Sequence record: LC667451.1
Reading direction: 5' to 3' (one strand)
DNA: 64,000 nt
The translations under genes and the position numbers were made by a program. Positions 19,115-55,250 of the stretch are shown here, in pieces. The notes beneath the pieces were generated by a model. That model was not told where the DNA came from, made no database searches, and saw nothing but the letters and a program-made list of their open reading frames with translations. The stretch's first letter is position 1, and every line of letters starts with the position of its first letter.

Positions 19115-21403
19115 TTACACCGCAGCCGGAGCCTTGGCCGGAGCTTCACCACTCGCAGGCTTGGCGGCAGCCGGAGCTGCGCCGTACTGCTTGAGCGATG
19201 CGTCGACCCAGTTCAGTGCTGCATTGCCGGTACGCAGAGCGTAGATGTTGAACTCCTTGAACGGCTCTTCCAGGGCCTTCTTCACGCCCAGGATAGCTTG
19301 CTTGGTGTTCTCCGGCGACGGACCGCTGGTGTCAGCGCTCTGGCCTTCTTGCGCAGCGAACTTCTTCGCCGTGGCAGCCAGTTCCTTGATCACGCCAGCC
19401 GCAGCACCAATACTGTTCTTGGCCGTCTTGATGATAGCAGCCAGTTCAGCAACTTGCTTCGCGACCGTACCAGCTTGCGGCAGCGACAGAACCGGCAGCT
19501 TGCTCTGCACGTTGCCTGCACCTTGTGCTTCGTCCATACCTGCGGTCGATTCGCCCATGTTCGAATCGTTGCCGATCTTGAAGACGATTTCCTGATTGCC
19601 CGGCAACACGTCCGAAGCAAACACCTGGAAACCATCTTCCGAGCCGCGCTGCTTCGCGATGCTCATGACCGCGTTGCCCCACGGCGAGGTGATCGTCATG
19701 CCGCCCAACGAGGCGCCATCTTGACCCTGACCCATCTTGGCGGTGCTCGTCGCGAACGAAAGAACCTTCTCGTAGCCAGCGTACAGTGCCTTGGCCGTCT
19801 GACCCAGCTTGGCCAAACCGTTCACGTCAACCTTGCCACCGATTGCCAGTGCTTCGGCAACTTGTGCATTGTCGACTTCGCGGGCCGTCGGTTGACCTTG
19901 CGTCGACTGAGCTTGTTGAGCCAGCTTGTTCGCACGGTTTTCCAGCTGCACAGCAGCGTTGGTCAGCTTCTCGCCGAGTTGCAGGAGGAATTGACCCGCG
20001 GCAACCAGTGCCTTCCAGATCTTGTCCCACACGGTCTTCAGCGCCTGGCCGATCGCTTCCATCGACAGTTGCGTCGAGGACATCTGCTTCGACACACCGC
20101 CGAACGATTCGAGCGACAGGACGTGCGGACGTTCCGCGACGGGGATGTCCAGACGGTTCAGATAGCCTTCGAATGCGTGACGGAAGATCGCGGCACCGCT
20201 GCGATTCAGGCCGCCCGTTTCCTGAGCGATCTTCAGCGTTTCGCGCAGATGTTCCAGCGCTTCGACGACTTCACGACCGGCTTCGACTTGTTCGCCGACT
20301 TCGTCGACGCTCTTTTCAGCGTCCGCGACTTCGAGCAGTTCACCTTCCAGACCGCCAGCAGCTTCGTCGAGTTGACCAGCTTCGGCTTCGACTTCCGTCG
20401 GCAGGCCTGCACCAGCTTCTTCGCCACCTGCGGGTTCCATCGGCTCAGCAGCGCGCATGCCGCGCCCTTCAGCACGAGCCACCAGCGCACGTGCGTTTTC
20501 GAGTTCGACCGGATCGATGTCGTCCACGCCACCAGCGTCGGGAGTAGCAGCCGGTTCGCCAGCGTCGACACCCGGCACTTCCGTACCAGCATCCGCGCCC
20601 AGATCGGCACCCGCTTCGCCCGTCGGCACTTCCGTTTCGCCGCCGCTCATCGCAGCTTCGCCACCTTGGCCGGGGATCGCACCTTCAGCGCCTTCAGCAC
20701 CAGCAGCCATTTCAGCGGGGTCGCCTGCGACTTCCGGGGGCATCGTGCCTGCTTCGGCAGCACCAGCTTCGGCACCTGCGTCGATCGGGGGAACTTCAGC
20801 AGCCGGGGGTTCACCCGCACCTGCTTCCGCGCCGTCGACCGGCGGCACAGCGGCTTCGCCGCCTTCACCTGCTTCTGCTGCGGCAGCCGCTTCACCTTCC
20901 GGTGCGACGTCCGGTGCAGCCGGAGCTTCTTCTTGCTTGCGGATTTCTGCTTCCGCTTCGTCCGAAGACATGCCTGCGTCTTCGAGCGCGACCTTGATAC
21001 GTGCACGTTGGATCGGCGAGAACTTCGCCTTCTTGCCGTGGCTTTCCAGCGCGCCAGCCGTGCCAGCGATCTTTGGCGGCTTGCCTTCGTCGCCCTTGGC
21101 GATGCTCTTCGTCGGGTCTTCACCGTTGGACAGCTGAGCCGGGACTTCGCCGTCTTGCTTCACAGCCGACGAACCGATGTCCTTCTTGTCAGCGGGTTCC
21201 TGGTCGCCCTTGTCCTTGCCTGCAACCGACAGCGTGGGATCTTCACCGTTGCTGATGTTGGCAGGCACTTCACCGTCTTTGGTCGGCTTCGGGATGCTCT
21301 TGTCGCCAGCGCCGATGGCAGCTGCGGCTTCTTTCGACAGACCGTCGGTGTTTTCCAGCGCGACCTTGGAACGGGCGCCGAAACCATTGCGAATGCTACG
21401 CAT
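19115..21403 (-). CDS. Internal head protein (gp93-like) with a greatly extended acidic low-complexity propeptide
   Basis: 762 aa. ALE, SLES and SMEA motifs precede the family helix LKTVWDKIWKAL. Confidence 0.7.
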   Translation of the reverse strand: MRSIRNGFGARSKVALENTDGLSKEAAAAIGAGDKSIPKPTKDGEVPANISNGEDPTLSVAGKDKGDQEPADKKDIGSSAVKQDGEVPAQLSNGEDPTKSIAKGDEGKPPKIAGTAGALESHGKKAKFSPIQRARIKVALEDAGMSSDEAEAEIRKQEEAPAAPDVAPEGEAAAAAEAGEGGEAAVPPVDGAEAGAGEPPAAEVPPIDAGAEAGAAEAGTMPPEVAGDPAEMAAGAEGAEGAIPGQGGEAAMSGGETEVPTGEAGADLGADAGTEVPGVDAGEPAATPDAGGVDDIDPVELENARALVARAEGRGMRAAEPMEPAGGEEAGAGLPTEVEAEAGQLDEAAGGLEGELLEVADAEKSVDEVGEQVEAGREVVEALEHLRETLKIAQETGGLNRSGAAIFRHAFEGYLNRLDIPVAERPHVLSLESFGGVSKQMSSTQLSMEAIGQALKTVWDKIWKALVAAGQFLLQLGEKLTNAAVQLENRANKLAQQAQSTQGQPTAREVDNAQVAEALAIGGKVDVNGLAKLGQTAKALYAGYEKVLSFATSTAKMGQGQDGASLGGMTITSPWGNAVMSIAKQRGSEDGFQVFASDVLPGNQEIVFKIGNDSNMGESTAGMDEAQGAGNVQSKLPVLSLPQAGTVAKQVAELAAIIKTAKNSIGAAAGVIKELAATAKKFAAQEGQSADTSGPSPENTKQAILGVKKALEEPFKEFNIYALRTGNAALNWVDASLKQYGAAPAAAKPASGEAPAKAPAAV
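21105..21285 (-). repeat. Two imperfect peptide repeats (DGEVPA.(I/L)SNGEDPT) in a head-protein propeptide
   Basis: KDGEVPANISNGEDPTLS and QDGEVPAQLSNGEDPTKS. Coordinates are approximate. Confidence 0.8.
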
Positions 21404-32757: not shown

Positions 32758-33075
32758 ATGATTCAATTAGTGCTTGGCTATATCAGGACGCACCTGACGT
32801 ACGACATGATCAATGCGTGTCTGGAGCTTGCGGGGGCAACGCTTCGATCCATCGATTGCATCAAGCTGTATCGAGCCAAGCGTTTCCAAGGAGGCTCGCT
32901 CTGGACCGCCCTGTTCTTCTTTTTGTGGGGTCTGTTTAACATCGTTTATTATCCGTCATTTAACCAGACCTACAGCTGGGCGGCTGCCATTGCGCTGACA
33001 GTTGTGAATGGTCTCTGGATTTCGATGGCGGTGTTTTACAATCGTCGTTATAGCAAACAACAGGTTAAAGCATGA
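32758..33075 (+). CDS. Small 3-TM membrane protein, PQ-loop/SemiSWEET-like
   Basis: SD ggag. Three hydrophobic helices. The IKLYRAKRFQGGS loop resembles the SemiSWEET IKTIRTRNTEGIS loop, but the PQ dipeptide is absent. Confidence 0.45.
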   Translation: MIQLVLGYIRTHLTYDMINACLELAGATLRSIDCIKLYRAKRFQGGSLWTALFFFLWGLFNIVYYPSFNQTYSWAAAIALTVVNGLWISMAVFYNRRYSKQQVKA

Positions 33076-35027
33076 GCGAAGTGAAAAATGTAGCTGCGGC
33101 TGACAAACCCATTGGGTACGAATGCCGGTTCGCCGTGTATTGTCCTCCGCCTCCGGGCTCGGACGATGACTACCATCTGGTCAAGGAAGTCGCGCACTAC
33201 GCGGATGGCCGCAAAGAACCGCGCACTCGACTGGTGAAGAACTATCCTCGGCCGTTCTGGGTGACCAAGAAAGGTTGCCGGAATCACGAGCAGAAGAAGG
33301 AATGGGAAGAGCTCAATAAGCTCGACAAGTTCGAAGCTACCCAGTCCAAGCTGAACGATGCGATCAAGAAGGCGCTGGACATGCGCTGGTTCCAAGGGGA
33401 CCCGCGTCAACTCTCGCGTTCACCCTTCCTGTATGGCTCGGACATTCTGTCGACGGCCGTCATGAAGAAGACGTATCAGAAGAAGTGGCCCAATCTGCAA
33501 ACACCGTACACGGTGGCCTGCTTCGATACGGAAAAGGACGTCGTCTACGGTACCGAAGAGATCAACATGGCGACGCTCTCATTCGGCAAGAAGGTCTTCA
33601 CGGCAGTGCAGAAGGCATTCGTCGAAGGGCTATCGGATGTGCAGGATCGAGCGCACGCCACCTTCAAGAAGTATCTGTCAGCGATTGACATGAAGGACAA
33701 GAAGGACAACCCGATCGTGGTCGACGTGATCGAGAAACGTGGGCTGGAGTGGGAACTGGTGGTGGTCGAGTCGGAAATCGATGTCATCGTCGAATGCATG
33801 AAGAAAGCGCACGAATGGAAGCCCGACTTCGTCGCGATCTGGAACATCGACTTCGACATGCAGATGATGATCAAGGCCTGCGAGAAAGCTGGCTACGATC
33901 CTGCTCACCTCTTTAGCGATCCATCGATGCCGCATGACTGGCGTCACTTTAAGTACAAGCAAGGCCCGAAGCAGAAGAAGACGGCCTCCGGCAAGATCAC
34001 GCCGATTAAGCCTGCAGATCAATGGCACACGGTTTATACGCCAGCGAGCTTCTACTTCATCGACGCGATGTGTGTGTACCGGAAGATCCGGATTGCCAAG
34101 GGGGAAGAGCCGTCGTATGCGCTGGACGCCATCCTGGACAAGATCTTGGGTGCGCGTAAGCTCAAGTTCAAGGAAGCCGAGCAGTACACCAAGCTCGAGT
34201 GGCACCAGTACATGCAGCAGAACTTCAAGCTCGAATACATCGTCTACAACGTCTTTGACTGTGTATCGATGGAGATGCTGGACGAGACCACGCTAGACTT
34301 AGCGGTGGCGTTACCAGGTGGATCGGGTTGCTCAGACTTCGGCAACTTCAAGTCACAGCCGCGTCGTACCGTGGACGATCTGCATTACTTCGCCATGGAC
34401 GAGAAGGGGCTGGTCATCGGTAGTACGTCTGATGAGATGGCGTCCGACCTGGATCAGCTGACGCTTGGTCTGGAGAACTGGATCGTCACACTGCCTGCTC
34501 ACCTGGTGGCGGACAACGGTTTGCAGTTGATCGAAGAGTATCCGTTGTTGCGCACCAATATCCGGGTGCACGTGGCGGACTTGGACGTCTCGGCATCGTA
34601 CCCGAACGGTGAGGTGGTCTTTAACATCGGTAAGTGTACGACCAAGAAGGAGCTCTGTAGCGTCGAGGGTGTCTCCGAACAGTTGCAGCGCGCTCAGGGT
34701 ATCAATCTGTCGGGAGGCCACACGAACGCGGTTGAGTTCTGTGTGGATATGTACAAGCTTCCACACATGGACACCTGGCTGCGTGAGTTCAACATGGCGC
34801 GCGGGATTCCGCTGGTACAAGATGCGACCCAGGAAGAACTGGACTTCATCTCGTCTCTGCTGCGCTCGGGTGAAGGTTCACCGACGACACCGGTTCGTCT
34901 GCAGATGACCACGGGCGTGACCATGACGATGGGTGGTGAACATCGTCCGATCAACGAGAACGGTTGGATCGACATGACGGACGCTGATAGCGAATCCGAT
35001 CAGGCCATTGTTGCCATGGAGGAGTAA
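33072..35027 (+). CDS. Family B DNA polymerase subunit (exonuclease + palm motif A), phiKZ gp82-like split polymerase
   Basis: ExoI FDTE, ExoII WNIDFD, ExoIII YNVFD, motif A DLDVSASYPN. No motif C was seen, consistent with a split PolB. Confidence 0.9.
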   Translation: MSEVKNVAAADKPIGYECRFAVYCPPPPGSDDDYHLVKEVAHYADGRKEPRTRLVKNYPRPFWVTKKGCRNHEQKKEWEELNKLDKFEATQSKLNDAIKKALDMRWFQGDPRQLSRSPFLYGSDILSTAVMKKTYQKKWPNLQTPYTVACFDTEKDVVYGTEEINMATLSFGKKVFTAVQKAFVEGLSDVQDRAHATFKKYLSAIDMKDKKDNPIVVDVIEKRGLEWELVVVESEIDVIVECMKKAHEWKPDFVAIWNIDFDMQMMIKACEKAGYDPAHLFSDPSMPHDWRHFKYKQGPKQKKTASGKITPIKPADQWHTVYTPASFYFIDAMCVYRKIRIAKGEEPSYALDAILDKILGARKLKFKEAEQYTKLEWHQYMQQNFKLEYIVYNVFDCVSMEMLDETTLDLAVALPGGSGCSDFGNFKSQPRRTVDDLHYFAMDEKGLVIGSTSDEMASDLDQLTLGLENWIVTLPAHLVADNGLQLIEEYPLLRTNIRVHVADLDVSASYPNGEVVFNIGKCTTKKELCSVEGVSEQLQRAQGINLSGGHTNAVEFCVDMYKLPHMDTWLREFNMARGIPLVQDATQEELDFISSLLRSGEGSPTTPVRLQMTTGVTMTMGGEHRPINENGWIDMTDADSESDQAIVAMEE

Positions 35028-43623: not shown

Positions 43624-44196
43624 ATGACTCAGAAAAGCGCCGGGCGCCAGATGCGCGACAAGATCAAGAACGACTTCAAGGACGAATTCGCCAAGAATAC
43701 GAACTGGAGCGACCTGCAAGCCCGCCATCAAGAATGCGCCGGACTCATTGCGATGCACCTGGGTGTGGCCCGTGTGCTCGAGCAGCCCGAGATCCTCGCC
43801 GAGATCCAACCGGCTGAGCAGACACTGCTGGTGCAGAACATCAATCTGCTCACCAAGGACTTGAAAGAGCGCATCGAGGAGCTCAACAAGATCTATTCGA
43901 CGCACAGCGACAAGACCGGCGCGGCGACCGAAGAAAACATCATGCTCTCGTTCGAGATCATGGAAAAGTACACGATGTGGCTCACCCTCGTGCAGTCCAA
44001 CGTGCAACCGACGGTCGCGCACATTCTCGAAATCACCAGCGTGATCGAGAAGCGCGTGCTGCTCAAGCAAGCCGAGCAAGACCCGGCTGCCACGACCGAT
44101 GTCGAGTTCAAGGAACAGACGCGTTCGCAGGCTACGGGCGTCGCCATCGATTCGGTCATCGCTACGGCAGACCACACGAATCCGCAACCGGAGTAA
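43624..44196 (+). CDS. Conserved helical phage protein, gp78-like
   Basis: ATG 43624, operon with the next genes. Confidence 0.6.
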   Translation: MTQKSAGRQMRDKIKNDFKDEFAKNTNWSDLQARHQECAGLIAMHLGVARVLEQPEILAEIQPAEQTLLVQNINLLTKDLKERIEELNKIYSTHSDKTGAATEENIMLSFEIMEKYTMWLTLVQSNVQPTVAHILEITSVIEKRVLLKQAEQDPAATTDVEFKEQTRSQATGVAIDSVIATADHTNPQPE

Positions 44197-44202
44197 GGGA
44201 AG

Positions 44203-45864
44203 ATGGAAGGTCAAGAGAACAACAACGTACATAACCCGGCAGCCACCACGGCCGCCAGTGTGCCGCCGGAACTGCGCGCGCCGTCGACGGCAGTCGAGCC
44301 TGCTGTGGAGCCGAGTTCGAATCTGCAACCGGCACCTCCTGCGCCGGAGGCAGGACTGACGCACACGCTGCCGAGCTCGGACCTGCTGGAAGATCCGGTG
44401 CACGAGGACGGTTATCCGACCCATGAGTCGGAAATCCAACCTGCGCAGGAACTGCCCGAAGACGAACTGGTGCGTCGTAAACCGCTGCCGGATTCGACCA
44501 CGGTGTTCCAGGAATCGCCGGTGTTCATTCCGCTCACGGGGGAATGGAATCCGGACGGCATCACGCTGGCGGTACCGGGTGCCTCGGAACAGGAAATGAC
44601 GGCTGCCATCGCTGCCATGCCCAATACCGACATCGGTGCGACCAAGCAAGGACGTGAATGGATCACGGTCGCGCAAGAAGGCTACCGCATGGCCACGCCT
44701 CGCCAGATGCTCTCGGAAACGGGCGATCGGGAAGGCTCGAAGTGGGAGCAGACGGTCAAGTCCGAACGGGGTCCGCTGGGTGCGTCGCGCCCGCCGCGCA
44801 ATCAAGACCCGAGCGTCAAGCTGCGCGGTGAAGATGCCGTGTTGGCGGTGCGTCAGGCGATTGGTCTCGGCGGTGTGATCCGGATTCCCCTGTGGCATTC
44901 GGGCTTTCACATCACGCTGAAGACGCCGAGCGATTCGGCTATCCTCGAACTGGAACGGCGTCTGACGGAAGAGAAGGTGCTGCTCGGCCGTATGACCAAC
45001 GGCATGCTGTTCTCGAATACGTCGGTGTTCATTGCGAACTACCTGGTGGAGTTTGCGCTTCAGCACATGTTCGCCACCACGCTCAAGGACAAGACCGACA
45101 TCGCGTCCAAGATCGTCTCGCACGACATCCAGCATCTGGCTTGGGGTCTGGCTGTTGCGATCTGGCCGACGGGCTTCCAGTACGTGCGCTCGGTGCTGGG
45201 TGAAACGGACGCCCAGAACAAGGTGCTGCGCGACAAGATCGCCATCGCCAAGCTGCAGTGGACCGACACCACGCAACTGTCCAAGTGGCAGATCAACCAC
45301 ATGGCCAGCGTGATGCCCAACACGATGACGGACGACTCGATCAAGAAGTACCGCGAGGAGTTCCTGAATCAGACGCCGCGTACGGTGCAACTGAGCGATA
45401 GCCTGTCGGTGACGCTGAAGGTGCCGACGCTGGCCGAGCACATCACCAACGGCCAGAAGTGGGTGAACGGCATCGTCGTCATGACCGATCGCGTGTTCGG
45501 CATGGAACAGGATCTGGACGATCGCAACAAGTACATCTTCGAGCAGGGGATGGCGACTTACATGCGTCAGTACGGCCACTGGATCGAATCGATTCAGGTG
45601 AACGGGCTGGAGATCGACGATCCGGAAACGATCGACGACACCATCTCGATGCTTTCGGCTGACGATGCGATTCGCGAGAAGTTCATCGACTTCACGGTCA
45701 AGTACATCGAAGACACCACGGTCTCCATGATCGCTGTGCCGACGGTGGCCGCGAGCGAAGAACAGAAGTATCCGCGTTGGCCGCACCTCTTGCCGATCGA
45801 CGCGATGGCGACGTTTTTTACCCTGCTCGGCCAGAAAGTCTCGCAGATTCGGGACCGCACGTAG
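44203..45864 (+). CDS. Conserved phage protein, gp77-like (possible baseplate-hub assembly chaperone)
   Basis: 553 aa. IPLWHSGF motif, synteny. Function is inferred. Confidence 0.6.
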   Translation: MEGQENNNVHNPAATTAASVPPELRAPSTAVEPAVEPSSNLQPAPPAPEAGLTHTLPSSDLLEDPVHEDGYPTHESEIQPAQELPEDELVRRKPLPDSTTVFQESPVFIPLTGEWNPDGITLAVPGASEQEMTAAIAAMPNTDIGATKQGREWITVAQEGYRMATPRQMLSETGDREGSKWEQTVKSERGPLGASRPPRNQDPSVKLRGEDAVLAVRQAIGLGGVIRIPLWHSGFHITLKTPSDSAILELERRLTEEKVLLGRMTNGMLFSNTSVFIANYLVEFALQHMFATTLKDKTDIASKIVSHDIQHLAWGLAVAIWPTGFQYVRSVLGETDAQNKVLRDKIAIAKLQWTDTTQLSKWQINHMASVMPNTMTDDSIKKYREEFLNQTPRTVQLSDSLSVTLKVPTLAEHITNGQKWVNGIVVMTDRVFGMEQDLDDRNKYIFEQGMATYMRQYGHWIESIQVNGLEIDDPETIDDTISMLSADDAIREKFIDFTVKYIEDTTVSMIAVPTVAASEEQKYPRWPHLLPIDAMATFFTLLGQKVSQIRDRT

Positions 45865-45938
45865 CCCAGCCGCGCCACCTCGGTCACCCCTTCTTTGGCA
45901 AGAACGACAAAGGCGAAGACCTCGTCGATGTCGTAGCC

Positions 45939-46346
45939 GTGCTTTCGAAACTCATCGAGAGCACGCCCAAGATTGTGGCGACCGATGTGCGGCTGTTGTT
46001 ACTGCATCGATACGAGACAGACTTTGGGATCTTCAATCATGATCTCGCCGATGATGAACTTGATCCCTTAGCCCTTATCCGCATGCATCCCAGGGAGGAT
46101 GCCTATACGGGTAGTTTTCTGGCTGAGCGGCTTCGTCAATACAACACACGCCATGTGTACGAAGTCACGAAGATGCCGTTCGATAGGTTTTTAGAACTGC
46201 CTCGCCACATGGTGATGGACATCCTCGAGTATGCGGACCAGGAATTGCGCACGCGTACGAAGATCATGCAGGATGAAGCGAATGACGCGGACGCACGGGT
46301 GCGGGCCATGAATCAGCAAAACCACCCCATGCGACCGCCTGTGTAA
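45939..46346 (+). CDS. Conserved phage protein, gp76-like (start uncertain)
   Basis: Frame is open from 45777. The first plausible start after the upstream stop is GTG 45939, without an obvious SD. Confidence 0.55.
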   Translation: MLSKLIESTPKIVATDVRLLLLHRYETDFGIFNHDLADDELDPLALIRMHPREDAYTGSFLAERLRQYNTRHVYEVTKMPFDRFLELPRHMVMDILEYADQELRTRTKIMQDEANDADARVRAMNQQNHPMRPPV

Positions 46347-46359
46347 TAGGGAGTCGTCA

Positions 46360-46812
46360 ATGATCATTTTCGATGAGCCCCGTAACTTGCTGGTGCAGGA
46401 AGCGCAAACCTTGGTGAATCCGGTCAATACCGAAGGCGTCATGGGTGCAGGCCTGGCTCTAGCATTTCGGGATTCGTACAAGGGTTTGTTTGAGGAATAT
46501 CGCGAAGCATGTCTGACCGACGTGTTCAGCAAGCGTGGCTTCTTCGTCTTTGACGTTGACGACACCCGTAAGATCCTTTGTCTGCCGACAAAACGTAGCT
46601 GGCGTCATCCCTCTCGGCTGGAGTGGATTGAGGAAGGCCTCTGGTATCTGGCAAACGAATACGAGTCTTATGGAATCACGTCGTTAGCGATTCCAGAGAT
46701 AGGGTGTGGACGCGGTCAGCTTTCTTGGGCTGAAGTGCGACCGCTCGTCTATCAGTATCTGGACCCGATCGTGTTGCCTGTGGGGATCTGCCTGAATCCT
46801 TTCGGACACTAA
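46360..46812 (+). CDS. Macrodomain ADP-ribosylhydrolase, DarG/Poa1p-like
   Basis: LVNPVNTEGVMGAGLALAFR, CLPTKRSWR.PSRLEWIEEGL, SLAIPEIGCGRGQLSW. All motifs follow the DarG macrodomain. Confidence 0.9.
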   Translation: MIIFDEPRNLLVQEAQTLVNPVNTEGVMGAGLALAFRDSYKGLFEEYREACLTDVFSKRGFFVFDVDDTRKILCLPTKRSWRHPSRLEWIEEGLWYLANEYESYGITSLAIPEIGCGRGQLSWAEVRPLVYQYLDPIVLPVGICLNPFGH

Positions 46813-46828
46813 CCGCACGAGACCAACG

Positions 46829-47281
46829 ATGATCGTCTACGAAGAACCATGCGCCATACTGCGTGCAGGAGAACAGACGCTTCTCACGCCCATCAACATT
46901 GACGCTGCAGGCGGCGGGGGCTTGCCCACAGCGTTTCGATATGCGTACCCTGACCTGTTTCCGGCGTATAGTCGGGCAGTACAGAAGCACGTGTTCGAGA
47001 ATGATGGTCTCTTTGTTTTTGATGCTACGCTTGAGCGAAAGATCTTGTGTGTGCCCACACGGCAGCACCGGAGCATTCCGATTCAGGAGCGGCTTGATTA
47101 CCTGGAGGAAAGTCTGATGGTGGTGGCAACCACGTACCAGAAGTACGGTATCACTTCGTTGGCGATCGATGAATTCGGCAGCTCAGAGCTCGCCTGGGAA
47201 GATGTGGAGCCACTCATTTACCGCTGCCTGGGACCCATCGACCTGAAGGTCGGTATCTACAGACAACCGGTTCACGCTTAA
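46829..47281 (+). CDS. Degenerate macrodomain paralog
   Basis: Colinear with the previous gene (KILC.PT, YGITSLAI, W..V.PL.Y) but catalytic-loop residues are altered. Confidence 0.8.
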   Translation: MIVYEEPCAILRAGEQTLLTPINIDAAGGGGLPTAFRYAYPDLFPAYSRAVQKHVFENDGLFVFDATLERKILCVPTRQHRSIPIQERLDYLEESLMVVATTYQKYGITSLAIDEFGSSELAWEDVEPLIYRCLGPIDLKVGIYRQPVHA

Positions 47282-47304: not shown

Positions 47305-47508
47305 ATGCGACGTTTGATTCAGCGGTACCGTAAGTGGCGAGAAGCTGCTTACGAGCGCGCCCGAATGGCTCGGGTGGAAGAAGAGTTGCGCATTCAGCGG
47401 GAGTTGGAGTATCTGAATACGCGACAGGCATCGGCGGGGAAAACCCTCACGGTTAGCACCCCGGAACTGATGGGACAAAGCATCAACAGTCTCAACCAGC
47501 GGCTCTAA
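47305..47508 (+). CDS. Small coiled-coil hypothetical protein (67 aa)
   Basis: SD ggag, ends at a terminator. Confidence 0.55.
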   Translation: MRRLIQRYRKWREAAYERARMARVEEELRIQRELEYLNTRQASAGKTLTVSTPELMGQSINSLNQRL

Positions 47509-47512
47509 TGCC

Positions 47513-47568
47513 AAAAAAAAAAAGACGGTCATAAGGCGAGGACCCGAAGGTCCTCGCTCTATGCCGTC
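47513..47568. terminator. CATA-hairpin-TATG terminator at a convergent junction
   Basis: A11 run, then gacggtcata-ag-gcgaggacc-cgaa-ggtcctcgc-tc-tatgccgtc. Confidence 0.8.
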
Positions 47569-47597
47569 AAAGGGGTAAAGCGCGAAACTGCTTTCAA

Positions 47598-49267: not shown

Positions 49268-50827
49268 TTAGATCAGTATCCCGATCTGATCGCTGCGATA
49301 GCCGATCATCAATGGTTCCAGCAGCTTCTTGCGATGCTCATGGTACTCGATGTGCTTCGGGAAGTCTTGGCAGCTTAACCATACGAAGATGGGAGCACGC
49401 CCGTCATCCAGTTTGCGCAGACGACCCAGACCCTGCACGTTCGACTGTGAAGACTTGACAGCCGTGGTGAGAATCGTGGTCGTCAATCCGGGGACGTCAA
49501 CAGCTGTACCCGCGGACATGAGGGTCGTACACCGGATGTCTGGCAACATCAGGTTTTCGTACGGGTCCTCTTCGACGTACCGCATCACCGTCTTATCAGG
49601 ATAGTTGCGCTTGAACCACTCAGTCGCATGCGTACACATGGCGATCGACGCGAAGAACAAGACGCACTTGTCTCCAGGGCGATAGAAATCGCTCTTCAGA
49701 TAAGTCCCACGCATCAACATGTTGATCATCTGCATGTAGTTCTCGGTCATCCGAGCAGACTTCATGATCGACTGTTCCAACACATTGTGCGAGTACGAAG
49801 ACCGACCACGCGCGGTGATACGGATCTTCGTTGGATCGGAGAAGCTATAGAAAACGGCACGACCAGTGATGTACTTGTCGTAAGGCAAACCTTGAAAGCG
49901 GTCCTTCCCAGGATACGCGATGTCGGCCATCCGTTTCTTGAAATCATCGTCCGGAATCAGCGTGGCTGAAAGCGAGACAGACTCTTCGACGTGCGTGATG
50001 CAGTCGAACTTGAAGTTCAGGAGGAAGTCCTGGTGCACCTCGTCGATGATCCGAGTCCGTGCCTTCAAGTGCTGAAAGAGTTGCCAAGGATAGCAGGCGT
50101 AGCCCAACTCCAAGGTCTCTTCACGCTTCTGCTCGTACAGCTTCAGCCAGTTCTGCGCTGTCTTGTTACTGATGATGACCCACTGGTAGGACGGGGTGAG
50201 CTCCGTCGCAGCCAGTTCCAGCAAGCCCATCAGTTCCTCGGAGCCCTGAGCGACGATCACGTCGTCGATTTCAAGCTCGAAGGTTTTCCGTAAGTCGATC
50301 AGCCATTTCTCAATGTACATGGGTCGAATTACCAGCACGCCAATCCCGCGCTTGTTGGTTTGCGACTTCATGGTACAGAACGACTTACCTTTACCCGTCT
50401 GAAGATCAACGAACTTCGAGATAGGTGTCGGAGCATCGAGATACGCAATCACCGGTTCCTGGTAATCACGCACTGTCCACTCCGGCTTGATACGCATGAA
50501 CACTTCCGGCGTGGGCTGAAGAGGGTGCTCGATCCACTCCACCAACTCGCCTTTGAGCATTCGCAACTCAAGATGAGCCTTGAAGTCCTTTAGCAAGTTG
50601 ATGTGGAATCGAAACTCCTCGACGGGTTCACCTGGGCCACGGCGACATGACACCAGGAAGGCCTTGTCCTTATCCGGCACCTTGCGGAACCGGTTCGTAC
50701 CAGGCACTTTCTCCCATTTCTCGGGTACGTATCTCCAGGCAAACCCCCCAACAATCGCGCGTGCGCGATCGGTCATCCACGTACACGCGAAGTTGTGGGA
50801 AAAGACTTCTATTCGTAACTCTGCCAT
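49268..50827 (-). CDS. Superfamily 2 (DEAD/DEAH-like) helicase, gp75-like
   Basis: Motif I LQTGKGKS, II IIDEVH, III SLSATL, VI QGLGRLR. Confidence 0.9.
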   Translation of the reverse strand: MAELRIEVFSHNFACTWMTDRARAIVGGFAWRYVPEKWEKVPGTNRFRKVPDKDKAFLVSCRRGPGEPVEEFRFHINLLKDFKAHLELRMLKGELVEWIEHPLQPTPEVFMRIKPEWTVRDYQEPVIAYLDAPTPISKFVDLQTGKGKSFCTMKSQTNKRGIGVLVIRPMYIEKWLIDLRKTFELEIDDVIVAQGSEELMGLLELAATELTPSYQWVIISNKTAQNWLKLYEQKREETLELGYACYPWQLFQHLKARTRIIDEVHQDFLLNFKFDCITHVEESVSLSATLIPDDDFKKRMADIAYPGKDRFQGLPYDKYITGRAVFYSFSDPTKIRITARGRSSYSHNVLEQSIMKSARMTENYMQMINMLMRGTYLKSDFYRPGDKCVLFFASIAMCTHATEWFKRNYPDKTVMRYVEEDPYENLMLPDIRCTTLMSAGTAVDVPGLTTTILTTAVKSSQSNVQGLGRLRKLDDGRAPIFVWLSCQDFPKHIEYHEHRKKLLEPLMIGYRSDQIGILI

Positions 50828-50849: not shown

Positions 50850-52895
50850 TCACACCCCAGTGCCGAGCACCTCCTGCGGCAGAAGGATTGCGTCCATGGG
50901 ATGGTCCGGTCGATTCTTCTTCGTGTAGCTTTCCGGGGAGATGAAGACATCGTAATGGCCTTCGTACGCCATCGTTGCCGACAGCGAACGACGATCCATC
51001 GTCATGTCCATCACACCCAGGCCGCGATCCGTCCACGGCTTGGGCAGTCGATAGTCATCATTTTCAGCACTGATGATCATCGCCCCATACAGTACAACCT
51101 CAACCACGGCCAAATTCACCGTCAGCTTGTCGTTCACGAGGTTATACAACTCCACGAGGAACGCATCAACCGAGGCCGCCATCTTGTCCCGCTCTTCCAT
51201 CTGCTTCTTGCTCGACTCCAGCATGGATGCGATGTCTTTCGAGTGATCGCTCATGTTGAAGTGAATCAGCGGCAGCGTCATCACAGGTTCCGTAAAGTCC
51301 CAACCCGCCATGTCGATGACGTAGTCGTTGTTGGCATTGAAATCCCAACCGACCTTACGGATGTGGCGCAGCATCGTGTACGTCATCGATGCCAGTCGAC
51401 GGTTCTGGAAAGTCTTCACCCGTTCAGGCGGATACTCCACATTGCCGTCCTTCACAATCACCGCGACTTCCCGCATTTCCGAGACTTGCCGGATATTCAG
51501 GTCATCGACGTTGTGGTTGGCCATGACGTCTGTGATGTTCGGCGCATAGATCGCCGGAATCACGAGCTTCACGTCCTTGCCTTTCAGGCGATCCGCTAAC
51601 AGGTACGACATCCCGTCGTTCGAGATCCGGAAGAGCTTGCGCTCCTCGGGCGTTAGCGTAATCGGCTCGACCGCCGCCGAGCTATCCAAGTGCTTGACTG
51701 ACAGCACCGACTGCGAGGACTTCTGCGCCATGCTCGTACAGCACATGTGGCCGATATTGGTTCGATCGTCCAGCACCGAGAGGCTCAGTTCGCCGAAACA
51801 CGTCGAACACACGCCATACGGGTCCGGATGCGCACAATGAATCACCGAGCGCAGCTTCACATACTTGCCGATCAGTTCGGTTTCGTGGCCGGTGATCGTC
51901 TTGAGCTTGCCAGTTGCCTCGTCCAGATAGTGCTTGCCTTGCAGCAGCGGTAGGTCGCCTGCGAAGGAGATGTCGCCTTCGTCGTTGAACTCCACCCCTC
52001 GCACTTGCCAGCTGAGGTATTCCTTCGTTCCGCAATCGGTATCCTGATGCAGGTTGCGCAGGGTCTGACACATCAACTGCAGACGCCGTGAGAAATACTC
52101 GGCTTCTTGCAGCGGCGACTTCGAGAACTGCAGTGCCTTCGCAGCGGACCGCGACTCGATCACCGAATCGTACAGCGTTCGGATACCCTCGACGTAACCA
52201 GGGATGATCGGGAAACGGAACTGATTCGAGTTGATGTCGGTCAGATAGCCGCGTGGTCCGATGGACTGCTGTACCTGGTTCTGGTTCACCAGCTTCGAAC
52301 GCAGCGCCAAGCTCACCGGATTGCGCGGCAGATCGATACCGTTGCCCAACACCTCGTCGATGATCGCGTAGGCTTCCTTGATCATGCGCGCGCCTTCGTC
52401 CGGTGACTTGTGGATCGCCGGTGCGACTGCTTCCTTCATCGCAATGATCTTCGGATGGTCCAGCACTTCCAGCCAATCGAGAATATCCATCGATGCGACG
52501 TACTCTTCGCAACGTGTGGACATTTCGTTGTAGATCTTGTTGGTCAGCGCATAGACCTTCGACGCCAGGACATCGCGTGTCACCTGGTGACGATACGCCT
52601 CATACACCGACCACATACAGTTGCCCAGCAGGTCCAAGTGCGTCCCGGAACCCAGCCGTTTCTTGCCCAGAATCGTGCGCACGTGGTGCTTCTTCAGCAG
52701 AGGCGTGTTCGGGTACTGCCTGTGGAAATCCCAGGCGTAACTCGAATACACGGTCTCACGCCAATTGGTTTCCACTTCCTCGTTATCGTCGAAGATCAAG
52801 GTGAACGTGCCTGTGAGCACATCCCACATGTCTTCTGACGGAATGTCGAGGAGTTTGCGCGCCCGAATCCGCACTTGCTGCGTTTTCATGAGCAT
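50850..52895 (-). CDS. Non-virion RNA polymerase beta'-like C-terminal subunit (gp74-like)
   Basis: GPRGYLTDINS, EAEYFSRRLQL, Zn site RSVIHC...VCSTCFG, SQSVLSVKH. Confidence 0.9.
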   Translation of the reverse strand: MLMKTQQVRIRARKLLDIPSEDMWDVLTGTFTLIFDDNEEVETNWRETVYSSYAWDFHRQYPNTPLLKKHHVRTILGKKRLGSGTHLDLLGNCMWSVYEAYRHQVTRDVLASKVYALTNKIYNEMSTRCEEYVASMDILDWLEVLDHPKIIAMKEAVAPAIHKSPDEGARMIKEAYAIIDEVLGNGIDLPRNPVSLALRSKLVNQNQVQQSIGPRGYLTDINSNQFRFPIIPGYVEGIRTLYDSVIESRSAAKALQFSKSPLQEAEYFSRRLQLMCQTLRNLHQDTDCGTKEYLSWQVRGVEFNDEGDISFAGDLPLLQGKHYLDEATGKLKTITGHETELIGKYVKLRSVIHCAHPDPYGVCSTCFGELSLSVLDDRTNIGHMCCTSMAQKSSQSVLSVKHLDSSAAVEPITLTPEERKLFRISNDGMSYLLADRLKGKDVKLVIPAIYAPNITDVMANHNVDDLNIRQVSEMREVAVIVKDGNVEYPPERVKTFQNRRLASMTYTMLRHIRKVGWDFNANNDYVIDMAGWDFTEPVMTLPLIHFNMSDHSKDIASMLESSKKQMEERDKMAASVDAFLVELYNLVNDKLTVNLAVVEVVLYGAMIISAENDDYRLPKPWTDRGLGVMDMTMDRRSLSATMAYEGHYDVFISPESYTKKNRPDHPMDAILLPQEVLGTGV

Positions 52896-52947: not shown

Positions 52948-55143
52948 CTAGGCCATCTTCTGTTTCGGGAAGTACTGATCGTTGGCTGGCTCGTAGACAA
53001 ACTTCCAGCCTCCGCACTGGGCGACATGTCGGACCAATTGCAGCGGCTTGGAGCCACCGAGCGGAACGACATTGCGATCGACCACGGAATGCAACGCCGT
53101 GGGCTTCTCGGCACGTAGCAACGTTTCCAGGATATGCTTGTGCGTGAACGGGTTGTTGTTCCGGTCGAGGATGTCGGCCATGATCTTCGGACCCGCGTAC
53201 GACACACCGATGCGAACTTCTGCTTCCCCCCACGCCCGGATGGCTTGTGTGCGGGTCGGTGCTGCATACTTGTCGGCGTTGGTAACTTGCGAGAGCACGC
53301 CAAAGTGCTGCAGCTTCCCGGACGATACAGCTGTCCAGTCGTCTGCGATCTTCTCGAGGATGATGATGTACACCGAGCCAATCCGCACGTTGTTCTTCGT
53401 GACAGACCGTACGCCCGAGTTGCCTATGTACGTCACCGGACCCCACACCGGCGGATACTTCTCCTGGATCTCCCGCACCATCGGGATATACGCAGGATCG
53501 TTTTCCGGCGGCATGAACAGATAGAGTCCATTCCTGCAGCTGTGGATGACGCTGGCCAGATGTTCCGCCCGAGATCGGGTGTACTGTCCGGTTCGGAACC
53601 AGCTTGCCTGGAGCGGTGAACAGATCTGATAGAAGCCGAGCAGATACTCCCACACCTCGTCCATGAGTTGGGGATTCTCGTTTTCCAGCTGGGCCAGCAT
53701 CTTCGTCAAGCGCCATTCCGGCTCATCACGATCGATGCGCAACATACCCACGATCCGCTTCATCACATCGCGACCCGCCGCATTAATAAACGGCTCGTAC
53801 AGACGACCGTAGTTCATGCGGTTCACCGTCGATTCACCCGACACGATGATGTCAGCGCGATTGCCTTCTTCATCCACCGGCATTTCATGCGGTTCGCAGA
53901 TCTTGCAGATCACGCCCTTGCCGCCGAAGCAGTCCGTCAGCTTAAAGCCGATGGTCGGGGTGATTTCGTACTCGATCACGAATTCCACACGCCAATCGTC
54001 CAACGGCGCTTGGCGATACAGCTTCTTGATGGACTCGCTCGGCGACTGGCTGTTCTTGCCGACCACACTGATGGCCTCCACCACCAGTCGATGGAACTCC
54101 GGCGTCAAACGCGGTGCTACACCCGGATGCTTGCTCTTCAGGCGGTTGTACGTCTGCAGGATTTCCTGATAGAACTCGCGCCGAGCGCGATCATAACGCA
54201 GCGGTTGCTCATCCATGCCTTCAGGAATCGCCGAACCTTGGCTGTTCAGGTCGTGATGCACCCGAATATCCACCACCTTGCCGCCTGTGGGCACATACGT
54301 CGCCTTGTCGAACATGAAATCCGGCTGACGCAACGCCGCACCGCTTTGCTCCACCACGGCCAGACTTTCGTCATAGCTACGCAGCATCATGAGCAGGCCA
54401 TCTTCACGCACGATGTCGCCGATGTCCGGGAACGCCTTGTATTTCTTGTGGTCGCCATAGAGGTTGAGCGGGAACCGCTTCGAACCCCATTCGACTACGC
54501 GCGTTTCGTACGTCTTGAACGTAAACCGGTCCAGAACGTCGCGGGAAATCACGATACCGTCTTCAGCCACGCCCGGAATGGACATGTACGCAACGTTGCA
54601 TTGCGCGCCGTACTTGTAACCGCCATCGGGAGTGACCGCGGGCGAATCGAGGAAAATCTCGCCCTCCGGAATTTCCATGTCCTTGACGAGCTTGGCTCGG
54701 CCGGACCGAGGTACATACGGGAAGCCAAAGTACTGGTGCTGAGAGCAGTACTTCGGGAGATTGATCATGCCAATCTCTTTGTTATCGCTGCGCTCGTAGA
54801 TCACGATCTGCTGAGGATTTTGTTCCCCATGCTCGATGATCGAATCCATGCCATACGACGTTCGATACCGATCGATGACAGCGCGCACCTGGCCCGTATG
54901 GGGCATCTTCACGTTCCAGGTATATTTGCCAAACTCCCGCTCCATGCCGGTCTGACAGAAGCGCTCGGTCGATCCCTTAATCACCAGGGTCTGACCGATG
55001 TGGCTGGAGAACATCTGCTCACGCGATGCAGAGTTCGCACCTTTCCAGGGATTCAGGCCGCACACACCCAACAGTTGCCGCAACAGTTGGTTCGGTTCCG
55101 GAATCGGCTGGTAGACACGCCTCTCAGCTGATTGAACACTCAT
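52948..55143 (-). CDS. Non-virion RNA polymerase beta-like C-terminal subunit (gp71-73-like, uninterrupted)
   Basis: NSASREQMF, GFKLTDCFGGKGVI, STVNRMNYGRL, GEAEVR. ATG 55143 follows SD gagga. Confidence 0.92.
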   Translation of the reverse strand: MSVQSAERRVYQPIPEPNQLLRQLLGVCGLNPWKGANSASREQMFSSHIGQTLVIKGSTERFCQTGMEREFGKYTWNVKMPHTGQVRAVIDRYRTSYGMDSIIEHGEQNPQQIVIYERSDNKEIGMINLPKYCSQHQYFGFPYVPRSGRAKLVKDMEIPEGEIFLDSPAVTPDGGYKYGAQCNVAYMSIPGVAEDGIVISRDVLDRFTFKTYETRVVEWGSKRFPLNLYGDHKKYKAFPDIGDIVREDGLLMMLRSYDESLAVVEQSGAALRQPDFMFDKATYVPTGGKVVDIRVHHDLNSQGSAIPEGMDEQPLRYDRARREFYQEILQTYNRLKSKHPGVAPRLTPEFHRLVVEAISVVGKNSQSPSESIKKLYRQAPLDDWRVEFVIEYEITPTIGFKLTDCFGGKGVICKICEPHEMPVDEEGNRADIIVSGESTVNRMNYGRLYEPFINAAGRDVMKRIVGMLRIDRDEPEWRLTKMLAQLENENPQLMDEVWEYLLGFYQICSPLQASWFRTGQYTRSRAEHLASVIHSCRNGLYLFMPPENDPAYIPMVREIQEKYPPVWGPVTYIGNSGVRSVTKNNVRIGSVYIIILEKIADDWTAVSSGKLQHFGVLSQVTNADKYAAPTRTQAIRAWGEAEVRIGVSYAGPKIMADILDRNNNPFTHKHILETLLRAEKPTALHSVVDRNVVPLGGSKPLQLVRHVAQCGGWKFVYEPANDQYFPKQKMA

Positions 55144-55250
55144 CGTTCTTTCCTCGTTGTAACGACTACTTTTATTGTCCCACATCACTGCCACTAATTC
55201 ACTCTTTCGAATGAACTCGCAGAAATCATCTGAGACACTCCGTACTACCT

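Follow-up and report, generated by a model that had tools for sequence, protein, structure and literature searches.

The locus

Burkholderia phage FLC9 (LC667451.1, 321,833 bp; host Burkholderia glumae) carries two macrodomain genes in tandem, gp362 and gp363, both of which are annotated in the record as hypothetical proteins and are called copy 1 and copy 2 here. They lie in a stretch of 64,000 nucleotides (nt) that was analysed as a whole (the window); its position 1 is record position 248001, and positions are those of the window unless the record is named. Copy 1 belongs to a kind of phage protein that is already known, AdfM, and the new part is its twin, which is conserved, under selection and relaxed at the active site. 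The features of the pair are as follows (aa, amino acids; Taq, Thermus aquaticus).

46360..46812, + strand: copy 1 (FLC9 gp362), 150 aa, ATG start, TAA stop; stand-alone macrodomain of the DarG/TARG1 class, AdfM homologue, intact
46417..46455, + strand: copy 1 loop 1, residues 20-32; N23 corresponds to N22 of Taq DarG and N23 of PhiKZ AdfM (alignment to 5m31)
46591..46593, + strand: copy 1 codon K78 (AAA), corresponding to the catalytic K80 of Taq DarG and K78 of PhiKZ AdfM
46693..46722, + strand: copy 1 loop 2, residues 112-121 (G115, G117, G119), the phosphate-binding loop
46813..46828, + strand: spacer between the copies, 16 nt, with a purine-rich Shine-Dalgarno-like element, too short for a promoter or terminator
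46829..47281, + strand: copy 2 (FLC9 gp363), 150 aa, ATG start, TAA stop; divergent paralogue with the macrodomain fold, intact
46886..46927, + strand: copy 2 loop 1, residues 20-33, rewritten and then frozen (T20, N23, A/V26, G28-G31, P33)
47060..47062, + strand: copy 2 codon R78 (CGG), where the catalytic lysine would be
47162..47191, + strand: copy 2 counterpart of loop 2, residues 112-121, which is shortened by two residues relative to copy 1 and has lost the glycine of copy-1 position 119

An earlier note on this DNA had described two colinear paralogues of 150 aa, and both open reading frames run exactly as it said, with no internal stops or frameshifts. The two proteins share 45% identity over 149 aa with two small gaps (BLASTP, E 1e-41), which is far above chance, and the motifs quoted for each of them were all found in place. 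Since the genes are in different frames and 16 nt apart, they are two genes and not a single two-domain protein. No gene conversion between the copies was seen: nucleotide identity is 54%, and the longest exact run is 8 nt. The spacer between them measures 13-19 nt in the ten related loci for which the junctions were printed, and the neighbours are the same on either side. Spacers are 10-26 nt long and hold Shine-Dalgarno-like elements, and promoters or terminators would not fit in them; a sequence scan found neither a sigma-70-like promoter nor a terminator between gp359 and gp364. The close spacing and common orientation suggest that copies 1 and 2 are co-transcribed, and their co-expression is likely.

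Copy 1 is an AdfM-type macrodomain

The name AdfM (anti-DarT factor macro) was given by Morgan et al. (Cell Rep 2026, PMC13309987) to the macrodomain protein gp104 of phage PhiKZ. This protein strips DarT2-made ADP-ribose from DNA and rescues DarT2 toxicity; it enters the phage nucleus, is required on DarTG2 hosts and protects PhiKZ, and its putative active-site residues are N23 and K78 (PMC13309987). The Tk.4 protein of phage T4 is an AdfM too and protects T4 from DarTG2, as genetic evidence shows (PMC13716836). In the bacterial DarG of T. aquaticus, K80 is catalytic (the K80A mutant is inactive) and N22 is next in importance; ADP-ribose is contacted by N8, L9, T20, N22, V31, Q34, T79, G117, G119, N120 and G121, of which G117, G119 and G121 form hydrogen bonds with it (Jankevicius et al. 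2016, PMC5179494). TARG1 and DarG have a lysine-based mechanism in common (PMC5179494).

Copy 1 passes every sequence and structure test for this kind. It matches Pfam Macro (4.4e-10) and the PADLOC DarG model (2e-45), and its top matches in the PDB are the DarG macrodomains of T. aquaticus (5m31, 1e-24) and Mycobacterium tuberculosis (5m3i) and the Thermosipho DarTG fusion (7omu), followed by TARG1. For both copies, DarG and TARG1 were the sole significant matches in profile and sequence searches of the PDB. The AlphaFold2 model of copy 1 has a predicted local distance difference test score (pLDDT) of 96.1 and overlays on the ADP-ribose complex 5m3e with a TM score of 0.90 and a root mean square deviation (rmsd) of 1.7 A (Foldseek). 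With PhiKZ gp104 (taken from NC_004629.1) copy 1 shares 33% identity (E 4e-25), and a tblastn search found copy-1-like genes in 288 phage records.

The active site is equally complete. Copy 1 shows the motifs N20-x-x-N23, G26-V-M-G-A-G31, P76-T-K78 with W81, and G115-C-G-R-G119, and the Taq contacts map through the 5m31 alignment onto N9, L10, P21, N23, L32, A35, T77, K78, G115, G117, R118 and G119. Conservation was counted over 99 canonical sequences, made up of 89 other homologues and 10 copy-1 sequences (FLC9 and nine orthologue clusters). In this set N23, G26, G29, G31, G115 and G119 are present in 99/99, K78 in 98/99, M28 in 97/99 and W81 in 90/99, and copy 1 has every one of them. All ten copy-1 sequences retain N23, K78, W81, G115, G117 and G119, while K78 is found in 88 of the 89 other homologues. 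The proposal that copy 1 is an intact DarG-like hydrolase thus stands as that of a candidate, with equivalents of Taq N22 and K80, both glycine loops and a close overlay on 5m3e: its fold and active-site residues can be seen in sequence and model, and the predicted activity follows that of characterised homologues.

Strictly speaking, copy 1 does not qualify as a DarG antitoxin. The C-terminal domain is missing, and its match to the NCBIfam DarG equivalog (1e-42) covers profile positions 7-138 of 338, the macro half only, and scores 146.5 bits against a cut-off of 250. There is also no adjacent DarT (DUF4433) gene at the FLC9 locus, where the flanking genes are without a Pfam match. Three plasmid matches overlap a second annotated gene, and in 3/3 that second gene is DUF4433 (DarT); two Burkholderia plasmid records hold DarG-like macrodomains.

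An AdfM homologue is to be expected in this phage, because FLC9 encodes a homologue of chimallin. It lies at record position 314830-316608 (- strand), about 2.8 kb past the end of the window, and is annotated as hypothetical. The search went from RAY gp222 to homologues in RTH11 and LucasX, and from the RTH11 protein to FLC9, where the match is 27% identity over 89% of the RTH11 protein (E 5e-40); tblastn with RAY gp222 found no chimallin within the window, as the homologue sits just outside it. The window does hold the split RNA polymerase beta subunits typical of the chimallin-encoding phage group. In the earlier note, an anti-DarT enzyme was held to be unexpected in a nucleus-forming phage and another target was therefore considered, an argument that is overturned by PMC13309987: AdfM homologues occur in about half of chimalliviruses, the protein is imported into the nucleus and works there, and DarT2 still reaches phage DNA despite the phage nucleus. 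A chimallivirus setting holds for AdfM of the PhiKZ type, but the AdfM of T4 shows that it is not required.

The taxonomy line of the FLC9 record makes no assignment to Chimalliviridae. Also in the window, and all hypothetical in the record, are the two genes for split RNA polymerase beta subunits, together with those for a DNA polymerase, a helicase and a PhiKZ-like internal head protein (50850-52895, -; 52948-55194, -; 33072-35027, +; 49268-50827, -; 19115-21403, -).

Copy 2 keeps the fold and has a probably remodelled pocket

Judged by its sequence and by the fold of its model, copy 2 falls into the DarG/TARG1 class like copy 1, and it fails the active-site tests, so it is not to be filed as an AdfM enzyme. 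It has no Pfam match, matches the PADLOC DarG model at 1.7e-18 and the M. tuberculosis DarG macrodomain 5m3i at 3e-10, and reaches the NCBIfam DarG profile over positions 9-147 of 338 with 47.8 bits against the cut-off of 250. Identity to PhiKZ gp104 is 25% over 83 aa (E 2e-9), with K78 missing in FLC9 copy 2. The AlphaFold2 model has a pLDDT of 87.3 and a weaker overlay on 5m3e than that of copy 1 (Foldseek TM score 0.80, rmsd 3.1 A). A drift toward another macrodomain class was considered and rejected, as the copy-2 profile finds DarG and TARG1 only when searched against the PDB.

In FLC9, copy 2 reads T20, N23, A26-A-G-G-G-G31, P76-T-R78-Q-H-R81 and G117-S-S, the last in a loop two residues shorter. 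The glycine-loop test (G26, G29 and G31; G115, G117 and G119) finds both loops intact in copy 1 and not in copy 2, and in the lysine test (the equivalent of Taq K80) copy 1 has K78 and FLC9 copy 2 has not. Residues were counted over 16 copy-2 clusters, FLC9 included. Loop 1 has been rewritten uniformly: position 20 has changed from N to T in 16/16, G28, G29, G30, G31 and L32 are present in 16/16 (M28 having become G and A30 G), and P33 is invariant. Position 26 is A or V, and the canonical G26 and M28 occur in 0/16. Position 78 is K in 11 clusters, R in 3 (FLC9 among them), Q in 1 and L in 1, against K in 98/99 canonical sequences (Fisher p = 1.6e-4). Further along, W81 is found in 0/16, two residues are inserted after position 83, and S85 has become E, D or Q. 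The length of loop 2 varies through deletions of two and five residues: G115 is present in nine clusters and deleted in seven, including FLC9, G119 is present in none, and position 120 is acidic in all 16. At position 9, canonical sequences have D, N or S, and the copy-2 clusters have E, A, T, V or N, with A in FLC9.

The earlier description of copy 2 as catalytically degenerate is borne out for FLC9, where the hallmarks of the enzyme are absent. It does not carry over to the whole family, in which 11 of the 16 clusters keep the lysine; this is relaxed constraint and no clean family-wide knockout.

Both paralogue clades are acidic, with an isoelectric point (pI) of 4.8-5.9 and a net charge of -2 to -9, against a median pI of 8.6 among the other stand-alone DarG-like macrodomains (89 sequences).

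Origin and distribution of the duplicate

Orthologues of copy 2 form 15 clusters of 59-99% identity in a search of 5.8 billion proteins, several of them on contigs of 310-327 kb. Fifteen distinct related loci were collected, 11 through copy-2 orthologues, one through a copy-1 orthologue and four from IMG/VR (one of these being the contig of locus L004). All 15 have a macro gene of 150-156 aa followed by a paralogue of 147-153 aa. A syntenic outgroup, the 212 kb contig L014, encodes a macro protein 57% identical to copy 1 and has homologues of the upstream genes gp359, gp360 and gp361 in the same order (tblastn), but it has one macro gene only, followed by an unrelated 169-aa protein. That a second macro gene might be hidden in single-copy genomes was considered and rejected: neither PhiKZ gp105 (148 aa, after gp104) nor the 169-aa gene of L014 is related to the copy-2 profile (hhalign probability <1%; BLASTP found nothing).

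A distance-based (neighbour-joining) tree unites the two copies in 86/100 bootstraps and the copy-2 proteins in 100/100; the L014-type proteins are sister to the pair. Measured from the duplication node, the path averages 0.74 to copy 2 and 0.13 to copy 1: copy 2 diverged about five times faster after the duplication. When 1.84 billion representatives were searched with a copy-2 clade profile, one cluster matched at E 6e-81; the next match is at 1e-32, and the later matches that were inspected are canonical macrodomains. No member of the copy-2 family was found outside the FLC9-like clade in the protein libraries searched (the 5.8 billion proteins and the 1.84 billion representatives). From the conserved adjacency, the single-macro syntenic outgroup, the tree and the profile search it follows that copy 2 is a lineage-specific tandem duplicate confined to FLC9-like phages.

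Selection on the pair

The ratio of non-synonymous to synonymous divergence (dN/dS, omega) was calculated by the Nei-Gojobori method on codon alignments, using unsaturated pairs, with pooled values from 14 close pairs. In unsaturated pairs it is 0.10-0.21 for copy 2, 0.04-0.16 for copy 1, 0.2-0.3 for the upstream gene and 0.12-0.5 for the small gene downstream. Pooled values are dN 0.038, dS 0.36 and omega 0.10 for copy 1, and dN 0.115, dS 0.70 and omega 0.16 for copy 2. Among windows of 12 codons none exceeds a dN/dS of 0.41, and 44 columns of copy 2 are invariant across the 16 clusters. Judged from these codon alignments, copy 2 is maintained under purifying selection. The earlier note had named neutral decay or frequent loss in relatives as a check on copy 2, and decay is not seen: the ratios are low and the gene is kept in 15/15 related loci.

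Constraint is distributed differently along the two proteins. In copy 1, loop 1 and the lysine loop are near-frozen (omega 0-0.04), and dN in loop 1 is 0 among close relatives. Copy 2 is most constrained in loop 1 (residues 18-47) and in the helix 90-101, with omega 0.05-0.08, and least constrained in the lysine loop (residues 72-89), where omega is 0.24-0.27 and dN is 0.21-0.29 against about 0.01 in copy 1. Pairs of copy-2 genes without the lysine show no relaxation (FLC9-L002 0.13, FLC9-L007 0.14, L002-L007 0.10).

Synonymous sites have diverged about half as much in copy 1 as in copy 2 or in either flanking gene when the same genomes are paired (L002-L013). For FLC9 and L002 it is 0.34 for copy 1 against 0.74, 0.82 and 1.30, and the GC content at third codon positions offers no explanation. 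A constraint at the RNA or codon level, or a more recent exchange of copy 1 between phages, is possible.

What copy 2 may do

Copy 2 is a maintained, neofunctionalised paralogue and most likely non-catalytic. It keeps the fold, its residue 78 is variable, its pooled dN/dS is 0.16 and it is present in 15/15 related loci, as would be expected of a pseudoenzyme or reader-type macrodomain. Because the lysine is dispensable in the clade, several contacts are gone and the length of loop 2 is variable, DarG-type glycohydrolase activity is unlikely to be the selected function of copy 2, at least in FLC9. The loss of several ADP-ribose contact residues also makes plain binding of ADP-ribose doubtful, which the earlier note had proposed beside binding of modified substrate or of DarT. 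With loop 1 rewritten to an all-glycine form and N23, G29, G31 and G117 fixed, the pocket looks remodelled and not abandoned, which favours a non-catalytic binding role.

Taken together, the sequence data, the models and the analogy with characterised systems would fit a two-gene counter-defence cassette, in which copy 1 is an enzyme of the AdfM type and copy 2 a non-catalytic, binding-type macrodomain working with it; we give this reading as a whole an even chance. Copy 1 would remove the thymidine ADP-ribose that host DarT2 places on single-stranded phage DNA, probably acting inside the phage nucleus by analogy with PhiKZ. Copy 2, a tandem duplicate of copy 1 that originated in the FLC9-like lineage, would have diverged quickly and then come under purifying selection. 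Its function would be independent of the DarG catalytic lysine, several ADP-ribose contacts having been lost while loop 1 and the central helix are strongly conserved, and it would act as a pseudoenzyme, a non-catalytic binder in the same conflict as copy 1. Most probably it would bind a modified nucleic acid or an ADP-ribose-like ligand stoichiometrically, bind the host ADP-ribosyltransferase, or serve copy 1 as a partner subunit; what its ligand is can only be our inference.

There are precedents for neutralising DarT by binding. Bacterial DarG counters DarT in two ways, by enzymatic reversal and by direct binding through its C-terminal domain (PMC5179494; PMC11481870), and the ICP1 protein AdfB (gp145) neutralises DarT by binding alone (PMC11481870). 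The role proposed for copy 2 resembles that of AdfB and of the C-terminal domain of DarG, which mimics single-stranded DNA. AdfB differs in being a protein of 77 aa, for which no macrodomain fold is reported in the text consulted (PMC11481870). By analogy, both are precedents for a binding layer and not evidence for one in FLC9.

Several observations weigh against a purely binding copy 2. Lysine 78 is still there in 11/16 clusters and N23 is kept in 15/16; G29, G31 and G117 are invariant (16/16), and G117 corresponds to G119 of Taq DarG, whose G119E mutant is impaired. With these residues in place, altered enzymatic activity may still be what copy 2 has. The two ligand loops are the least confident parts of the copy 2 model, with pLDDT 74-78 (74 for residues 111-120). 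The pairwise dN/dS values moreover lack phylogenetic independence, and in many pairs the synonymous sites have reached saturation.

The residues just named are also what would speak for copy 2 as an enzyme with a changed substrate, a hydrolase retuned to another ADP-ribose linkage (for example on another base, on RNA or on protein), so that the pair would cover two host ADP-ribosyltransferases. Such an enzyme would be in keeping with the retained fold and the invariant loop 1, where dN/dS is 0.06-0.08, and phages are known to carry distinct orphan antitoxin-like enzymes against DarTG1 and DarTG2 (PMC11825919; PMC13716836). However, 5/16 clusters, FLC9 among them, have R, Q or L instead of the lysine without relaxed selection, and G26, M28, W81 and G119, which are near-invariant in the 99 canonical sequences, are lost in 16/16. 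A retuned hydrolase would also have to accommodate the loop 2 deletions of two and five residues and a lysine loop that is the least constrained part of the protein, and we regard it as rather unlikely. If it were true, copy 2 would extend the AdfM family only modestly.

The target might also be something other than DarTG2, the alternative of the earlier note, with copy 2 as a sponge for ADP-ribose-derived immune signals or with the pair reversing ADP-ribosylation of RNA or protein. The ADP-ribose derivatives that macrodomains bind are numerous, NAD and ADP-ribose genes abound in jumbo phages (PMC9503650), the conserved glycine loop of copy 2 is what a phosphate binder would be expected to have, and no host DarT has been identified, although the DarT repertoire of the host was not searched. 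However, the nearest characterised relatives of copy 1 in sequence and fold are the DarG2 macrodomains and PhiKZ AdfM, and only then TARG1. The copy-2 profile likewise matches nothing in the PDB beyond DarG and TARG1, and position 9, one of the contacts, varies in copy 2. Taking both sides together, another target seems improbable.

A division of labour by compartment is a further alternative, in which the copies would differ chiefly in their recognition by the phage import machinery: one copy would be imported into the phage nucleus and the other would stay in the cytoplasm or at the shell. Import of AdfM through PicA is known for PhiKZ, PhiPA3 and Asesino, and PicA and its cargo co-evolve (PMC13309987). 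In PhiKZ gp104 the region recognised by PicA comprises residues 77-95 (bioRxiv 10.1101/2024.03.21.585822), which is the segment where copy 2 differs most, with its two-residue insertion, the loss of W81 and the highest dN. A difference in import would nevertheless leave the remodelling of loops 1 and 2 and the relaxed lysine unexplained, and we think it distinctly improbable as the reason for the pair. Finally, the loss of catalytic hallmarks, non-synonymous evolution about three times faster than in copy 1 and the missing Pfam match in FLC9 might suggest a decaying, functionless duplicate, but this has next to no credibility, being contradicted by a frame of 147-153 aa that is intact in all relatives, even at 59% identity, by the results on selection (dN/dS 0.10-0.21, no window >0.41, 44 invariant columns) and by the conserved position and spacer.

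If copy 2 is indeed a non-catalytic binder, it could represent an anti-defence protein of a new kind, in which a macrodomain of enzymatic origin serves as a stoichiometric binder. It would supplement AdfM with a second, non-enzymatic layer, whether by holding on to ADP-ribosylated nucleic acid or the host ADP-ribosyltransferase or by taking an ADP-ribose-derived immune signal out of circulation. This specific proposal is speculative, and we would call it unlikely as it stands. Were it true, the phage would have rebuilt, from one duplicated gene, the two-pronged logic of bacterial DarG, in which the mark is reversed and the toxin is blocked.

Comparison with known systems

AdfM was described only in 2026 as the reason why nucleus-forming phages survive DarTG2, and FLC9 and its uncultivated relatives show that it can duplicate. 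The spare AdfM copy was not lost; it was remodelled around the ligand pocket and has since been maintained by selection. It is a natural example of the passage from anti-defence enzyme to probable pseudoenzyme, and it points to a second, unrecognised function in the phage-host conflict around ADP-ribose. FLC9 has been cultivated, infects a rice pathogen and has a place in biocontrol trials, which makes the pair accessible to structural and expression work.

Like PhiKZ AdfM, copy 1 is a stand-alone, DarG2-like protein of about 150 aa with the same N23/K78 numbering, encoded by a chimallin-bearing jumbo phage. The difference lies in number, as PhiKZ, RTH11, LucasX and the outgroup L014 have one copy each and FLC9 has two; a word search of the AdfM paper (PMC13309987) gave no mention of a divergent second copy beside AdfM. 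Activity, import and protection have been shown experimentally for PhiKZ gp104.

The bacterial DarG of DarTG2 systems (T. aquaticus and M. tuberculosis; 5m31, 5m3e, 5m3i) is the top match of both copies in sequence and fold, and copy 1 keeps its catalytic N and K. Both FLC9 proteins differ from it in being without the C-terminal DarT-binding domain (150 aa against about 340 aa for the full-length protein), and copy 2 is in addition without K78, W81 and part of loop 2. Human TARG1 (C6orf130; 4j5q, 4j5r, 4j5s) is the second-best class in structure and sequence for both copies, but at only 22-23% identity, and it is a eukaryotic protein from another biological setting. The nsp3 protein of betacoronaviruses, with three tandem macro domains (PMC9503650), is similar in that an active macrodomain stands beside highly divergent macro-fold copies retained by selection. 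There, however, the domains are part of one polyprotein, in an unrelated virus and of another macrodomain class, while FLC9 has two genes from a recent, lineage-specific duplication, so the comparison can serve as an analogy only.

Neighbouring genes and other observations

The genes on either side of the pair in FLC9 are the following.

43624..46346, + strand: gp359 (190 aa), gp360 (553 aa) and gp361 (135 aa), upstream and co-oriented, syntenic in all relatives and in the single-macro outgroup
47305..47508, + strand: gp364, 67 aa, 23 nt 3' of copy 2

No Pfam matches were found for gp359-361 and gp364-367, and none in PADLOC for gp361 and gp364, the genes directly adjacent to the pair. In PHROGs these neighbours have matches of unknown function or none; gp359-361 all match groups of unknown function, and gp364 has no PHROG match.

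The gp364 protein (47305-47508, + strand) is basic, probably helical and fast-evolving, with a dN/dS of 0.12-0.8. A gene of 65-72 aa follows copy 2 in FLC9-like loci, and tblastn with gp364 gives a match in L021 and L022 and not in L019 and L020; no match was found by tblastn in the single-copy outgroup L014. This small gene may be part of the same cassette.

In most relatives a gene of 466-500 aa on the minus strand (phrog_3141, function unknown) comes right after the small downstream gene (as an example, L002:5766-7268 and L003:5778-7196). It is missing at that spot in FLC9 (window 47509-47597), L008 and L011, which makes this a variable site beside the macro pair. The flanks of the relatives also hold a GIY-YIG gene, a weak LAGLIDADG_3 match inside a large gene, and a SpoU-type methylase (L003:72-815, L011:4876-6459, L009:5475-5939), which are mobile or accessory insertions that differ between otherwise syntenic genomes.

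Among the phage matches listed, Salmonella phage SA002 (MN445183.1, near 110433-110888) is the sole phage besides FLC9 with two places that match copy 1. The gene there is annotated as 'putative phosphatase, fusion protein', and SA002 may be another multi-macro arrangement in a jumbo phage.

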